Below, one piece after another: positions 7,839 to 59,219 of a stretch of DNA of 64,000 nt. Positions within the stretch are counted from its first letter, which is position 1. Every line of letters begins with the position of its first letter. The position numbers and the translations under genes are program-made. The stretch lies in the sequence record KT895374.1. The stretch is one strand, 5' to 3'. The notes under the pieces are model-generated. The model worked only from the letters and a program-made list of their open reading frames with translations, was not told where the DNA came from and ran no database searches.

Positions 7839-7989
7839 TTTGATTTCCCTCCATACTATTATTTAATTTTGATAGTAAAATTTTTTTAAATGAATAGTCA
7901 TTAAAATTTTCAATGTTATTTTCTTTTTTGTTAGTTTTAATAATTTCAATATGTTTTAAATAATCTTTACCTGTAGTTACAAATATCAT
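7825..7989 (-). CDS. small hypothetical protein (54 aa), not in the ORF track
   Basis: GAGGAG RBS; fills the gap between 7838 and 7991. Confidence 0.5.
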   Translation of the reverse strand: MIFVTTGKDYLKHIEIIKTNKKENNIENFNDYSFKKILLSKLNNSMEGNQNERN

Positions 7990-7990
7990 A

Positions 7991-8242
7991 TTAAATTTTC
8001 TCCTCTCTTATAATTTTATCAATGGTTGCATGCATTGCATGTAAGTAAAATAATACATCTACAATTTCTCCATCCATTAATTTTTCTCTATAATCTTTAA
8101 ATTTTTTTAAATGTAAGATAATCTCATAATTATTTTCCTTTTCATTTTCTTTCTCCAATGAAAGATAGGAATTTTTTATTTTCTTATTTATTTCTTCAAT
8201 TCTTTTATTAGCAAACCATAGATCATCTCTCTTTTTTACCAT
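7991..8242 (-). CDS. hypothetical protein (83 aa)
   Basis: AAGGAG RBS. Confidence 0.65.
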   Translation of the reverse strand: MVKKRDDLWFANKRIEEINKKIKNSYLSLEKENEKENNYEIILHLKKFKDYREKLMDGEIVDVLFYLHAMHATIDKIIREEKI

Positions 8243-8259
8243 TAATGTATCTCCTTAAT

Positions 8260-8299
8260 AAAGATAACCTAGACTCAAATAAGAATCTAGGTTATCTTT
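8260..8299. terminator. inverted repeat terminator
   Basis: AAAGATAACCTAGA-N12-TCTAGGTTATCTTT. Confidence 0.7.
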
Positions 8300-8303
8300 T
8301 TAT

Positions 8304-8606
8304 TTATTCTTCAATAATACCATCTTTAATATTTAAATTATATTGATTTTTTTCATGTAGTTTATTATAAAGTTTTTCTGATTTTGTCATTACCCATTTT
8401 CCATCAATTTTAAAGTAGTACTCGTTATCTTCATCTTTTTTATGTTTAATTTTTTGTATTTTTTCCTCAATAGTTACCCTATCACTAAAAGTAACTTCAT
8501 CAGGCTCTAATTCACTTTGCTGTTTTATTTCAACCATTGTAATTATCATAACTAAAGATATAGCAATAATTATGATTGATAATGTAATTACTATTTTATT
8601 TAACAT
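8304..8606 (-). CDS. single-pass membrane protein, paralogue of 6983..7363
   Basis: N-terminal TM helix; KWVMTKSEKLYN...IKDGII. Confidence 0.7.
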   Translation of the reverse strand: MLNKIVITLSIIIIAISLVMIITMVEIKQQSELEPDEVTFSDRVTIEEKIQKIKHKKDEDNEYYFKIDGKWVMTKSEKLYNKLHEKNQYNLNIKDGIIEE

Positions 8607-8623
8607 TCTTATTCCCCTGTTTA

Positions 8624-9910
8624 TTAGTTGTTTAGTATATGAATTCCTAATTGCTGATCTTTTACTAAATCAAAATCACTATTGAATTCTCCATCATCCC
8701 TATTCACAATAAAGCTTTCTGGTGATAATTTTTTAAAGTGCTTATGAGCTTTAGGATCCATAACTCCAATAATATTTAAAACATCTCCGTCAAAATCTCC
8801 TGAGAAAGCAGATAAAAGGTTATTACTAATACCTAATGTTAGATCTTTATAGTCTTTTTTAACTACTGCTACTTTTACATATAAAATACTACCTAATGAA
8901 ATTGTCGGATTCCTATTAAGTAAGAATCTTAAACCATTTTTAGTTTTCTTTACTAACTCCATCATAAAGTTATAGAATTCTTCATTATAACCTAGCATTC
9001 CTTTTTCCCATTCTGTTGTTGCTTGATTATAATTTATACCTTTTACTTTACTAATTAAATTGATAATTTGAAATTTATATAGTTCTCCAAATGTCCTATA
9101 AGGCATTGCTACCTCATCAATCTGATAAGTAGTTAAAGGAGTAATTACATTACGAGCACTAAAATCTAATCTTGATCCGTAAATATCTCTACGAATTAAA
9201 CCCTTCTTACCTTTTAGTTGATCAATAATTTTTTTATGAACAATATTTGTATAAGACTGAATTTGATATAAGAGAGATAATTTTAATAAATCAATATTCT
9301 CTTTGTTCTCAATAACTTTATCTTTAATTTCTTTTGAATAAAGAATTAAGAAATTATAATCATTATTAATTTCATCAAATATTAAAGTATTTCCCCTCAT
9401 TGTAGCAGGTCTAAGTTTAGATGAGTATACTGGAAATTTATTAATAAAAATAAGATCATTATGTTTCGCTAGAAAATCAAACTCTTTTTGATACTTATTT
9501 TTATTTGTATATTCCTCCATCAAATTCCAAAATCTTTCTTTAAATTCAATCAGACCAATATCAAAGTTAGGATCTCTATTTTCATCTTCTTCATTAATAG
9601 GTTCTTGAACTTTCTCGCCACTATGATCAATTGGTATATTAAAGTTAATGATGTTATTAACTTTTGGAATACATTTACGCACTAACTCAAATAATGCTGG
9701 ATTAATAACATAGTATGGATCAAAATTAATCCATCCAATCGTTCCAATATCCTTATCATTATCACTTTCATTAAAACTTCCAAAAATTCTTTCTGAATAA
9801 ATTCCATCATCTAGGAATTCATTACTGTTGTTAATTGATTTTTCATTTGTAATTAAATTTTCTTCATTGTAAATCTTGTCATAATCAATTAAAGAAATTT
9901 TTTTTCCCAA
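8624..9910 (-). CDS. phage multisubunit RNA polymerase beta' subunit, N-terminal/catalytic part
   Basis: GIYSERIFG, LKGKKGLIRRDIYGSRLDFSARNVITP, LLNRNPT and catalytic FSGDFDGD; TTG start with GGGAGG RBS; 428 aa, typical of split jumbo-phage RNAPs. Confidence 0.92.
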   Translation of the reverse strand: MGKKISLIDYDKIYNEENLITNEKSINNSNEFLDDGIYSERIFGSFNESDNDKDIGTIGWINFDPYYVINPALFELVRKCIPKVNNIINFNIPIDHSGEKVQEPINEEDENRDPNFDIGLIEFKERFWNLMEEYTNKNKYQKEFDFLAKHNDLIFINKFPVYSSKLRPATMRGNTLIFDEINNDYNFLILYSKEIKDKVIENKENIDLLKLSLLYQIQSYTNIVHKKIIDQLKGKKGLIRRDIYGSRLDFSARNVITPLTTYQIDEVAMPYRTFGELYKFQIINLISKVKGINYNQATTEWEKGMLGYNEEFYNFMMELVKKTKNGLRFLLNRNPTISLGSILYVKVAVVKKDYKDLTLGISNNLLSAFSGDFDGDVLNIIGVMDPKAHKHFKKLSPESFIVNRDDGEFNSDFDLVKDQQLGIHILNN

Positions 9911-9980
9911 AGAAAATCATCCTCCCATTCAAATTAATGTTACTAATATTCTTAAAAAGTAACAAATATCATACACATAA

Positions 9981-9988
9981 ATAATATA
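9981..9988 (-). promoter_or_regulatory. early-type promoter upstream of the RNAP beta' gene
   Basis: TATATTAT-N6-G with G at 9974. Confidence 0.65.
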
Positions 9989-10021
9989 TATTTATTTTTT
10001 ATATATGTATTAATATAATAT

Positions 10022-10045
10022 AATAAGGGGTTTTTATCCCTTATT
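10022..10045. terminator. terminator of the structural operon
   Basis: AATAAGGG...CCCTTATT hairpin after 10056..11294. Confidence 0.6.
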
Positions 10046-10055
10046 ATATTATATT

Positions 10056-11294
10056 TTATTTAAATAATAACTTTGAAGTATTATTATCTATTATACCTGT
10101 TTTTTTAATATTTTTATTTTTTTGAAAATTCATAACTAAATCTTTAGTATACTCATCATACCAACCAATATTTTCTATATGATCAGTATAACCTAATTCT
10201 ATTAACCTATTCTGAATTAGTTTTATATCATCACCATACATCATAGGAGTCTTATATTCTATAGTTCTACGTATAATATTATAATCACTATTAGTAATAA
10301 ACTCCCATGTAATAGGTCCAACTTTACCATCAATAGTTAATGAATGATTTCTTTGAAATTCAGAAACTTTATCCATAGTTTCGTTATCATAAATTCCTGA
10401 TATAGGACACTTATATCCTAATAGATTTAATCTATTCTGTAATAATTTAATATCTTCTCCAAACAAAATAAATTTAGGATTAGATTCAAAATATAAAACT
10501 CTATTAAATGTTTTATCATTCTTAAAATATTCCAAAGATATTTTTTTAATAGAAATATAATCATCTTCATCCATTATTCCATCTGGTATTAAATTATAAT
10601 ATTTTTGAAATCCAATAAGTTTATCTTTTGTTTCTAAACTAAATATTCCTGATATAGAACATTTGTATCCCAATAGATTTAATAATGTTTGTAATTCAAT
10701 TATATCATTTCCTTGCATATTATTCTTTGGATCATAGAAAATTTTTCTCCCACCGAAAGTATAAATTATATTACCGTTAGGTATGGTTCTAAATTTACTT
10801 ACTAATTTATCTGAACTTTCATCAATTATTTCATTAATGGGAAAAAATAATCCAGGAGTTTTAAAATTAGAATTTAATTCTTTAAGCGTATATACGTCTC
10901 TAATAGGATATTTATCTAATAAATGTTTAATAAGAGTAATGATTGAATTCTTTTGCTGACTATTTATTAATGAGTTATCAAAATTACCCTCGACCTGAAT
11001 ACCTAGACTATTAATATTAAAATTACTATTATCATCTTTAGAGAAGTCACCATAAATATTATCTTCTCTACCTCTTACAATGACACCATTTTTTTGAATA
11101 AAATAATGACCACCAAACATTGATTTAGAATTTTCATATTTGTCTTCTTTATCAATATCATAAATATCAGGATTCTTTCTATCCTGTGTATCATAAAATA
11201 TGATAAATAAAGGTCTATTACCTGTAGTTAATTTACCTATTGGTTTTATATTTGAAGCTATAATGTTAATAGACAAATTAATCACTTCTTCCAA
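10056..11294 (-). CDS. amidase_2/T7-lysozyme-fold domain (apparently non-catalytic) plus three peptidoglycan-binding domains
   Basis: GGHYFIQKNGVIVRGR...NSLGIQVEGNF...TPG; three repeats of GxDIxxLQxxLxxLGY...GxYDxxT...VxxFQ. Confidence 0.8.
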   Translation of the reverse strand: MEEVINLSINIIASNIKPIGKLTTGNRPLFIIFYDTQDRKNPDIYDIDKEDKYENSKSMFGGHYFIQKNGVIVRGREDNIYGDFSKDDNSNFNINSLGIQVEGNFDNSLINSQQKNSIITLIKHLLDKYPIRDVYTLKELNSNFKTPGLFFPINEIIDESSDKLVSKFRTIPNGNIIYTFGGRKIFYDPKNNMQGNDIIELQTLLNLLGYKCSISGIFSLETKDKLIGFQKYYNLIPDGIMDEDDYISIKKISLEYFKNDKTFNRVLYFESNPKFILFGEDIKLLQNRLNLLGYKCPISGIYDNETMDKVSEFQRNHSLTIDGKVGPITWEFITNSDYNIIRRTIEYKTPMMYGDDIKLIQNRLIELGYTDHIENIGWYDEYTKDLVMNFQKNKNIKKTGIIDNNTSKLLFK

Positions 11295-49544: not shown

Positions 49545-51084
49545 ATGATTATTACACCAACTGATAAGCAATCAAAAGCTATTAAGGATATTATTGCTTG
49601 GTATACAGGTAATGAATTTAATGGAAAAGATCCAAATAGAATTTTTACATTAAGTGGTTTAGCAGGATCGGGTAAAAGTTCCGTAGTTAAATTATTTATT
49701 GAGGAATTAGGATTAACAAATAATGAAGTTGCCTTTGCTGCTTATACGGGAATGGCAGCTAATGTTTTATTACAAAAAGGTAATACAGGTGCTACAACCA
49801 TTCATAAATTAATTTATGATACAGTACCGATAAAGAATGAGGAAACAGGAGAAATAGAAAAGTTTATACATCAATTAAAAGAAGAATTAGATAGAAAAGA
49901 AATTAAGTTAATAGTTATTGATGAAGTTTCAATGGTAAATGAGTCAATGTTGGAACAACTTAAAACCTTTGGTGTTAAAATTATTGCTATTGGTGATCCT
50001 GGTTTATAATAAAAGTTGGCTTGGATCTAAAAATACTTCTTTAATTGCTGGAAACTCCTTAGAACCTATTAAACTAAAACGTGATTGGTAACAATGAGCG
50101 TGAAAGTTAAAAATTAGTAGGATTGGACAATCAGCCGCTAAGTTCCTTTAATAAGGAGAAAGTTCAGAGACTATCAAAAACCTTTAGGTGAGTAGAGTAC
50201 ACTGTAAGCGTTGACAGTGGAAACAAGAAGCATCTTTAAAAGATGAAGATATAGTCCATTCTTATAGGAAACTATAAGCAGTTCATAAGAGAACGATATA
50301 AGTAGTAGCGCACTTATATGAATAAAATATGCAACTTCCACCAGTAAGTGGAGGTAATACACTTCTTAGAAATCCTGATGTATTCTTAGATGAAATACTA
50401 AGACAGGCATTAGATAATGAAATTATAAGACTATCTATGAAAGCTAGAAATGGAGAATATATTAATTTTGGAAGATATGGAAATGATGTAGTAGTAATTA
50501 GAAATAATCAGATTGAACCTGAAATGTTTATGTCAGCTGATCAGATCATTGCAGGAAGAAATGCAACAATTTCTGCATTAAATACTTATCATAGAAAGAA
50601 ACATCTAGGAATTAATGATCCTATGCCTATTGTTGGAGATAAAATTATTTGTCTAGATAATAATTGGAATTATGTATTAACAGAGGGGAATATTGAGATT
50701 TCCTTAGTAAATGGATCTATTGGAACAATTGAAGAAATGAGTAATCTACAGAGAGCTAGACTATACAACTTTACTTTTAAACCAAACTTTATGAAAGAGA
50801 AAGCATTTCATGATGTACATGTGGATAAAATTCCATTTATGCATGAAACTCTTCAGCAATCAATTAAACCAAAAGAACTTTATATTTATAGAAAGAAATT
50901 TATTGATGGAAATGGTATTAATAAATTCAATTATGGTTATGCTATAACATGCCATAAAAGTCAAGGATCAGAGTTTAATAACGTTTTACTTTTTAATGAA
51001 GTAATTAATAAGAGAATGCATCCTAGATGGTTGTATACAGCAATTACTAGAGCTAAAGAGAAATTAATTATTGTAAATGTATAG
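49545..51084 (+). CDS. RecD/Dda-like SF1B helicase, spliced (exons 49545..50003 and 50332..51084, 403 aa)
   Basis: GLAGSGKS, AAYTGMAA, VIDEVSMV, GDPG|QLPPV restored by splicing, YAITCHKSQGSEF, YTAITRAK. Confidence 0.9.
50004..50331 (+). ncRNA. group I intron (IA2-like), ORF-less, 328 nt
   Basis: Exon ends in U, intron ends in G; P AATTGCTGGAAA, Q AATCAGC, R TCAGAGACTA, S AAGATATAGTCC; P1 with a U-G pair; P10 AAGTTG/CAACTT. Confidence 0.92.
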
Positions 51085-56625: not shown

Positions 56626-59219
56626 TGGTTGCTAAAAAACAAATGGAATATAATGAGGATTCAATTGTAGTATTAGAAGGACTAGAAGGCATTAGAACCA
56701 GATTTGATATGTATGTAGGTGGTAAGGATACAGCTTCCTTCCATCTAGTCAAAGAAGTGGTAGATAACTCCATTGATGAAGTATTGAATGATTTTGCTAC
56801 AAAAATTAATGTGGAGTATATTGAGAAAGATAATAAAATTATTATTGAAGATGATGGTCGAGGTTTACCAGTAGAAAAACATAAAAAATTAAAGAAACCT
56901 ACAATTGAGATTTTATTTACAGAAATCCATTCAGGTGGTAAGTTCGATAAAAATTCTTTCAAAGTATCTGGTGGGAAAAATGGCGTTGGTGTAAAGGCTA
57001 CAAATGCCTTATCTGAGTCATTAATTGTTGAATCATTCTATAAAGGACATCATTATAAAATTGAATTCTCTAGAGGTAAAGTTGTAAAACCATTAGAAAA
57101 GCTAGGTACTACAAAAAAATCAGGGACTAAAGTAACATTTATTCCAGATAGCACAATTTTTGGAGATTATGCTAAATTAGACCCTAATATCTTAAAAGAA
57201 GAATTGGATAAAAGAACTTATATCAATGCTGGTTTAACAATTAACTTCAAATATGGTAAGGAAAAATTAAAATTTTATCATGAAAATGGAATTAAAGATT
57301 ACTTAACAGCTCTTAATGATGATCCTCTATCAGATATTATTGAGTTTAAATTTGACGATAAAGATCTAAATAACTACCATGTTGTATTTAATTATGCTAA
57401 TAAAGATGAAGAACATATTAAGTCATTTGTTAATGGTATTGCAACAAGCAAAGGTACTCATGAGACAGGTTTTAAAACTGGTTTAACAACAGCTATCTTA
57501 GAGTATATTAGATCAAATAATCTATTGAACAAGAAAAATGAAAAGTTAGAGATTAAAGGGGAAGATATTAGGTCTGGTTTATTTACTATTATCAACCTAA
57601 AACATACTCTACCAGAATTTAAGAGTCAAACAAAAGATGAATTAAGTAATACTGATGTTATTGGAGTTATGAAAGTAAAAACACATGAAAGTACTTTAGA
57701 TTGGTTAAATAAAAATCCTGAATCAGCTAAAAAAATTTGTAACAGAATTATTGCGTTTGCTATTGGAAGAAAAGAAGCTAATGCGATTAAAGATAAAATT
57801 ATTAAAGTGAATAGTGGATCTTCAGGTTTATCTTTTATGGCTTCATTCTATGATTGTGACAATCGTGACATTAATGAAAATGAAATTATTGTTATTGAGG
57901 GAAAATCCGCTTCAGGAAATGTTCGTAATGCTAGGGATGCTAATATTCAAGCAGTATTTCCATTAAGAGGTAAACCGCTTAATTCTTATAATTCAAACCA
58001 TGCTAAAATTTTACAAAATAAAGAATATAAAGAGTTAATCAAAGTAATGTTTGGTAGTACTGATTTAAAGAATATTAATTATGAAACACTTAGGTATGGT
58101 AAATTAGTAATACTAAGTGATGCAGATGATGACGGTGAAATGATTGCCGTCAATAAATCTTTCTAACTGCTGGAATATCTTTAGAGTCTATTAAACTACA
58201 ACGTAATTGGTAACAATAAGCGTGATAGTTAAAAATTAATAGGATTAGATGATCAGCATCTAAGTTTCTCTTTCTAGAGAAAAAAGTTCAACGACTATCT
58301 TTTATAGAGTACAGTACAAGTGTACTGGAAAAGGAAGATACCTTTGATAAGGTAAAGATATAGTCTCATCTTATAGGATAACTATAAGCAGTTCATAAGA
58401 GAACGCATTAAAGAGTAACGTCTTTAATGGAAGATAATGTATCATATTGCCGCTTTATTATTAAGTTTTATTCATAGAAACTTTATAAAACTTATTGAAG
58501 ATGGTAGAATCTATATTGCAATGTCACCTCTTTATCGTATTAATAAAAATGGAAAATATATTTATTTTAAAAATGATAAAGAGTATGATAAATATCTAGT
58601 TAAAGAAATCTCTGAAACGTATGATTTAAAGGATATTAAAATGAAAGATTTTATCCAAAATGGTAAAAAATTCGTTCAAAAATTTGATCAAGTAAGATAT
58701 AAATACAATATTGATAGTTCAGTTTTAAATATCTTAGAAAATCATTACAAAGTAACTGGAACTGTGACAAGTGATGATGCATTTGAGGAATTAAAAGAAA
58801 AAGAATTAGAAATTACTAAGGAATCTAACTATTATCAAGTATCAGGACTAGTAGGAAATTCATGGCATAATTTCAAAATTGACTCTGATTTCTTAAAAGA
58901 TATTGACAGTTTATCAAAAACATATGCATTGGATATTGTTGACATTATCAATAAAAAAGATAAATCAACTGTTAATGATATGTATATTTACGATGCTTAT
59001 CATAAACTGTCAAGTTCTGTTAAATTTGAGAGAAAACGTTTTAAAGGAATTGGAGAAGCTAATGCAGATGAATTATTCGATACAACATTAGATCCTAAGA
59101 AACGTGATATTTTACAAGTTCAATTAAACGATTTTGATAAATCTGGAAATCTAAATGAATTATTCTTTGACAAAAATAAAGCTAACTTAAGAAAAGAATT
59201 TATTTTGGAAAATTTATAA
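56625..59219 (+). CDS. gyrB: type IIA topoisomerase B subunit (GyrB-like), spliced (exons 56625..58136 and 58440..59219, 763 aa)
   Basis: EVVDNSIDE, DDGRGLP, HSGGKF, GGKNGVGVKATNALS, EGKSA, PLRGKP, DADDDG|YHI restored by splicing, RFKGIGE. Confidence 0.9.
58137..58439 (+). ncRNA. group I intron (IA2-like), ORF-less, 303 nt
   Basis: Exon ends in U, intron ends in G; P AACTGCTGGAA, Q GATCAGCA, R TCAACGACTA, S AAGATATAGTCT; P1 UGACGGU/GCCGUCA with a U-G pair; P10 AUGAU/AUCAU. Confidence 0.92.

Follow-up and report, generated by a model that had tools for sequence, protein, structure and literature searches.

A predicted IA2-type group I intron interrupting motif III of a Dda/RecD-like helicase in Bacillus phage vB_BpuM-BpSp

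Introns have been described in the genes for RNA polymerase, DNA polymerase, terminase and gyrase in the AR9 group of phages (bioRxiv 10.1101/2020.12.14.422802), and they are already known in the helicase genes of other phages (PMC5526547). Phage introns of subgroup IA2 carry two hairpins, P7.1 and P7.2, which separate P7 from the 3' strand of P3 (P3') and are joined by a GUA-containing linker (PMC3428280), and the subgroup also has an extended P9 domain with P9.0, P9.1 and P9.2 (PMC4227781). One such system is the Pf-WMP3 intron within the gene for DNA polymerase (PMC3428280), which, like the intron of Bacillus phage vB_BpuM-BpSp (BpSp) considered here, has P7.1 and P7.2 between P7 and P3', a GUA linker and no P2; it encodes an HNH nicking endonuclease and its self-splicing has been demonstrated, whereas the BpSp intron is ORF-less and its splicing is something that we infer. 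A comparison of another sort is with the intron of T4 nrdB, whose endonuclease I-TevIII is defunct and which, like that of BpSp, persists without a working endonuclease, introns of both kinds being open to mobilisation only in trans (PMC2790892; PMC3984707). Collaborative or trans homing as described for such elements (PMC2790892; PMC3984707) differs from the situation in BpSp, in which no free-standing endonuclease gene is found within ~3 kb of the intron.

The stretch of DNA analysed (the window, 64,000 nucleotides, 26% G+C) is the first 64 kb of record KT895374.1, and window and record coordinates are identical. The record is that of BpSp, a jumbo phage of 255.6 kb in the genus Takahashivirus, and it annotates gp065 at 49545-50009 and gp066 at 50329-51084, each as 'hypothetical protein', with zero annotated features between them; throughout the region from 46.5 to 54.1 kb the public record has CDS features only. 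On the sequence evidence set out below we consider it highly probable that 50004-50331 is a self-splicing phage group I intron of IA2 type, residing in the Dda/RecD-like SF1B helicase gene of BpSp. The two CDS of the public record, gp065 and gp066, are read here as a single predicted helicase gene, 403 codons long once its intron is set aside, a reading that corrects the annotation of KT895374.1 from two hypothetical proteins to a single intron-split helicase and makes motif III of a Dda/RecD-like helicase an added entry among phage intron insertion sites. The BpSp helicase intron is a sound annotation fix, yet an ordinary element for a phage group as rich in introns as this one. The parts of the gene are as follows.

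49545..50003, plus strand: helicase exon 1 (gp065), 153 codons, with Walker A and Walker B, extending to GDPG of motif III
50004..50331, plus strand: predicted group I intron, 328 nt, ORF-less, IA2-like, starting after U50003 and ending with the terminal guanosine (omega-G), G50331
50332..51084, plus strand: helicase exon 2 (gp066), 250 codons and the stop, beginning with the QLPPV part of motif III and including the C-terminal UvrD_C_2

The last base of exon 1, 50003, completes a codon (...GGT GAT CCT GGT, G-D-P-G), and exon 2 opens in frame at 50332 (CAA CTT CCA CCA GTA, Q-L-P-P-V). In protein searches done separately for each exon, Pfam assigns AAA_19, AAA_30 and PIF1 to exon 1 and UvrD_C_2 to exon 2, while in the profile of PHROG 325 ('Dda-like helicase') the exons occupy positions 469-612 and 613-867, adjoining at 612|613. 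Identity to the Dda-like helicase of AR9 and PBS1 is 61-62% for exon 1 and 56-58% for exon 2. The host gene has the hallmarks of an SF1B helicase of the Dda/RecD/Pif1-like type, namely an N-terminal domain with Walker A and B, a GD..Q motif III and UvrD_C_2, and its relatives in the PDB are Dda (3UPU), Pif1 (5FHD) and RecD2 (3E1S), in the last of which QLPPV is aligned. The insertion point of the intron lies directly 5' of the codon for the motif III glutamine, a residue which in SF1B helicases touches the gamma-phosphate of ATP (PMC4824106). The tblastn alignments leave no bases between the two exons in at least 15 uninterrupted homologues, which include AR9, PBS1, Goe21, nine Staphylococcus jumbo phages and Listeria phage LPJP1; among the tblastn homologues the gene is interrupted only in BpSp (a gap of 328) and in the Bacillus phage Internexus (a gap of 1323), and the alignment to AR9 gp016 runs unbroken over GDPG-QLPPV. 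An earlier, sequence-only reading of this DNA had proposed that excising 50004..50331 joins GDPG to QLPPV, and the reading frame, AR9 gp016, the tblastn homologues and PHROG 325 all bear this out.

The same observations speak to a different account of the locus, by which gp065 and gp066 are translated separately and assemble as a split helicase. The two CDS in GenBank, together with an ATG at 50329 that shares the frame of exon 2, would be compatible with such an arrangement; however, the annotated ATG of gp066 (50329-50331) consists of the final three bases of the intron and has no Shine-Dalgarno sequence upstream of it, the break would fall inside motif III, immediately ahead of the glutamine touching the gamma-phosphate (PMC4824106), a complete ribozyme fills the 328 nt separating the two CDS, and in all other relatives found by tblastn the helicase is a single chain. 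We consequently give a split helicase scarcely any credence and retain the single, intron-split gene, at the beginning of which a Shine-Dalgarno-like GGGGGA lies 5 nt upstream of the exon 1 ATG.

The intervening sequence is itself recognised as a group I intron by covariance-model search. When 49900-50450 is searched alone, the Rfam model RF00028 (Intron_gpI) matches full-length, over model positions 1-253, with 79.4 bits (E 1.3e-20) as against a gathering score of 50, a favourable outcome of the cmscan check that the sequence-only reading had named; a record-wide search with the same model gives the intron the same score, with E 1.5e-21. When the entire 64-kb window was scanned with Rfam, neither the gathering nor the E-value mode gave a match, a result which we attribute to speed-filter losses in AT-rich sequence, so that the blank scans are not proof of absence. 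An intron in gyrB (58127-58388), which scores 64.4 bits in a local scan, was missed by the window scans and by the record-wide search as well, and since both the helicase and the gyrB introns escaped scans of long sequence, intron counts for BpSp are to be taken as lower bounds. Record-wide searches with RF00028 gave 12 matches in BpSp, 18 in AR9 and 21 in Internexus, and those in BpSp (8 of the 12 above the cut-off) are clustered in few genes, at 116.8-118.4, 137.0-138.7 and 189.7-192.9 kb. As standard Rfam scans of long AT-rich DNA passed over these two introns, the tallies for such phages are likely too low. The minimum free energy of the intron relative to shuffled sequences (z-score -1.41) is not significant, and this measure is uninformative in so AT-rich an RNA.

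The positions of the two splice sites are indicated by pairings between the intron and its exons.

49995..50027, plus strand: P1, formed by the exon strand 49995-50003 and the guide 50019-50027, closed at the 5' splice site by U50003.G50019
50332..50337, plus strand: P10 target, the first six bases of exon 2, in perfect pairing with 50013-50018

The P1 guide GCUUGGAUC (50019-50027) pairs with the exon sequence GAUCCUGGU (49995-50003) at 8 of 9 positions, the exception being a single U.U mismatch at -4; the claim of the sequence-only reading that an internal guide pairs with the exon and ends in a U-G pair thus stands at eight of the nine positions, the mismatch having been left unmentioned. 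The P1 loop contains the P10 guide AAGUUG (50013-50018), which adjoins the P1 guide on its 5' side and is fully Watson-Crick with CAACUU (50332-50337), exactly as had been stated of the first six nucleotides of exon 2. When the first 40 bases of the intron were shuffled 200,000 times, a P1-like guide arose in 2,750 of the shuffles and a P1 guide with an adjoining 6-bp P10 in 1. The base at -1 of exon 1 is T in both intron-bearing alleles (BpSp and Internexus, GGT), and the empty alleles of AR9, PBS1, Goe21 and MarsHill carry A, A, G and A respectively; the T fits the U.G pair that the 5' splice site requires. Relative to Internexus, P1 has a double change at -7 (exon U and guide A in BpSp, exon C and guide G in Internexus) and P10 has another (G-C in BpSp, A-U in Internexus), and in each case a synonymous exon difference is mirrored by a change in the guide. 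These compensatory changes in P1 and P10 tie both splice sites to the proposed positions. That the intron splices at some other junction, an idea raised only for the single P1 mismatch and with no evidence in its support, is exceedingly improbable, because the protein alignment permits no alternative in-frame join, the nearest G upstream of 50331 (at 50320) would shift the frame, and P1 and P10 covary with exon bases at these exact positions in Internexus.

With the junction placed at U50003|C50332, the intron's fold family, exact boundaries, covariation and orthology can be regarded as established, and its catalysis is what the standard group I pathway would predict. The BpSp pre-mRNA would adopt the P3-P9 core, and P1 would form between the internal guide and the last bases of exon 1, its U.G wobble lying at the splice site. 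Attack after U50003 would then come from free guanosine bound in P7, P10 (50013-18 with 50332-37) would position exon 2, and the 3'-OH of U50003 would attack after omega-G50331, such that ...CCUGGU would be joined to CAACUU.... From the spliced mRNA a single helicase of 403 residues would be made, while on unspliced RNA translation would stop two codons into the intron.

The helices modelled are P1, P3, P4, P5, P5a/P5b, P6, P7, P7.1, P7.2, P8, P9, P9.1, P9.2 and P10, P2 being absent, and an unconstrained centroid fold finds most of them. Their positions, P1 and P10 aside, are these.

50036-41 / 50225-30, plus strand: P3, with covariation in the family
50047-51 / 50131-35, plus strand: P4, with covariation in the family, found in the MFE and centroid folds
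50056-58/50125-27, plus 50062-63/50123-24, plus strand: P5, with compensatory changes in Internexus and covariation in the family
50065-72/50114-21, plus strand: P5a, a peripheral extension found in the MFE and centroid folds, with compensatory changes in Internexus
50079-82/50098-101 and 50084-87/50092-95, plus strand: P5b, capped by a GUAA tetraloop, with compensatory changes in Internexus
50143-48/50153-58, plus strand: P6 hairpin, with a 4-nt loop, covarying in the family
50169-73/50252-56, plus strand: P7, invariant in the family, placed by the Rfam alignment
50180-83/50186-89, plus strand: P7.1, minimal, 3-4 bp and effectively 3
50200-05/50214-19, plus strand: P7.2, a solid 6 bp, predicted by RNAalifold
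50231-36/50240-45, plus strand: P8, covarying in the family
50261-67/50272-78, plus strand: P9, with a GAAA loop and four compensatory changes relative to Internexus
50281-84/50291-94, plus strand: P9.1, in the centroid fold, conserved without covariation
50296-303/50312-19, plus strand: P9.2, in the centroid fold, with two compensatory changes relative to Internexus

Both P7.1 and P7.2 fall in the stretch that separates P7 from P3', and the linker in their region is the conserved GAGUAGAGUA. P7.2 shows three compensatory changes relative to Internexus and strong covariation in the family, and in P7.1 the two outer pairs covary in the family. Taken together, P7.1 and P7.2, the GUA linker and the missing P2 are consistent with subgroup IA2, P7.1 being minimal, and P9 with P9.1 and P9.2 may be an extended domain of the kind found in that subgroup; the assignment to IA2 that the sequence-only reading drew from P7.1 and P7.2 is therefore upheld, in that both hairpins are present between P7 and P3', the first of them weak. 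The peripheral P5a/P5b extension (50065-50121) is unusually long and GNRA-capped, by GUAA in BpSp and by GAAA in the Internexus ortholog; it contains five compensatory changes, and most members of the family are without it.

Further support for the fold comes from a family alignment of 25 RF00028 matches from BpSp, AR9 and Internexus, for which RNAalifold, unaided, predicts P3, P4, P5, P6, P7.2, P8 and P9, with compensatory changes in 27 of the 40 predicted pairs. A separate helix table agrees with RNAalifold, P3, P4, P5, P6, P8 and P9 covarying and P7 being invariant in 23 distinct relatives. This covariation, along with the RF00028 match and the exon junction, supports the reading of 50004-50331 as a group I intron. 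Other group I introns in the AR9/PBS1 jumbo-phage group (Takahashivirus), and in Staphylococcus jumbo phages resembling MarsHill, belong to the same ribozyme family as the BpSp intron, sharing with it P3-P4, J6/7-P7, the GAGUAGAGUAC linker and J8/7-P7'; in the AR9/PBS1 and MarsHill-like phages, however, these introns are in other genes, and the helicase is uninterrupted in AR9, PBS1, Goe21 and the Staphylococcus jumbo phages.

An ortholog at the same GDPG|QLPPV site is found in Bacillus phage vB_BspM_Internexus (MW749003.1, 167984-169306), where a 1323-nt intron encodes an endonuclease of 330 aa (PHROG 559 'HNH endonuclease', with the Pfam zinc finger DUF4379); in MW749003.1 the helicase is annotated as two fragments, the endonuclease gene is listed as well, and an intron feature is absent. 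The endonuclease gene begins in the P6 loop, which has only 4 nt in BpSp, and continues through P7 and P7.1. Outside the ORF the two introns are 78% identical and possess the same helices, including P5a/P5b with its GNRA loop. The 328-nt and 1323-nt introns were aligned in two parts, since global MAFFT misplaced the ORF gap, and of 89 pairs modelled in BpSp, 57 are unchanged in Internexus, 16 are changed on both sides and still paired, 6 are changed on one side, 6 are broken and 4 are missing. The compensatory changes fall in P1, P10 and seven further helices, and most of the broken or missing pairs belong to P8 or to P7.1, whose place in Internexus is taken by the ORF.

In Internexus the P8 hairpin is lacking (at ~169216-169246), ~12 nt of BpSp being replaced by 2 nt, while P8 is kept in 25 of the 25 aligned family members; the Internexus intron may be impaired in splicing despite its intact endonuclease ORF, and the loss indicates that copies of the helicase intron can decay. 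One could envisage by extension that the BpSp intron, too, is a decayed, non-splicing relic, with a dead helicase gene or one from which only an N-terminal fragment of 154 residues is made, the more so as Dda is non-essential in T4 and a non-splicing relic would hence be tolerable if the Dda-like helicase of BpSp is dispensable. The BpSp copy, however, retains all core helices, P1, P10, the U at -1 and the omega-G intact, its match to RF00028 is full-length at 79 bits, and both exons are open, at 56-62% identity to intact homologues and with every motif retained. A relic is on this showing very unlikely, albeit somewhat less so than either a split helicase or another junction, and we retain an active intron in BpSp as the preferred reading.

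One site is accordingly represented in three states in three close phages or groups of them, being empty (AR9, PBS1 and Goe21), occupied with an endonuclease (Internexus) and occupied without one (BpSp), a set usable for study of the homing cycle. The BpSp intron has stops in all three forward frames and its longest open stretch is 28 codons, which agrees with its earlier description as ORF-less, and with no endonuclease gene inside it self-homing is impossible. It is the ORF-less counterpart of the endonuclease-bearing Internexus intron. Collaborative homing by a neighbouring free-standing endonuclease was also considered and rejected, zero nuclease domains being found in the eight flanking ORFs (~3 kb). 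Relatives of the Internexus endonuclease do exist elsewhere in BpSp, as two ORFs (312 and 324 aa) with 38-41% identity to it, at 110641-111507 (plus strand) and at 137195-138088 (minus strand), some 60-87 kb from the helicase intron; the ORF at KT895374.1 137195-138088 (minus strand), which sits beside RF00028 matches, is probably intron-encoded. A search of viral and metagenome contigs for the pattern of P1 guide plus P3-P4 gave zero further copies at the helicase site.

The empty and occupied alleles also carry what may be a trace of past mobility. AR9 and Internexus diverge by 1.1% upstream of the helicase gene and by 6.9% over exon 2, 8 of the differences falling within the 40 bases that follow the insertion site on its 3' side. 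Such a dense cluster resembles the co-conversion tract that homing leaves behind, and would imply that the helicase intron lineage has moved by gene conversion. We put forward tentatively, as a rather doubtful possibility, that the ORF-less intron is an immunity allele, which by splitting the presumed target of an Internexus-type endonuclease would protect the BpSp helicase gene in co-infection and which that enzyme could also spread in trans; in the case of the intron endonuclease of PhiPA3, interference competition between phages has been shown (PMC11620839).

A further helicase gene that may carry such an intron was encountered in an unrelated metagenomic phage, IMGVR_UViG_3300046001_008198 (7987-10196, minus strand), in which an SF1 helicase ORF ending ...STHKA is followed by an RF00028 match at 44.8 bits (gathering score 50) and then by an ORF of 261 aa, which we read as GIY-YIG-like. 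This would be a related intron at another conserved helicase motif, T-HK|QG.
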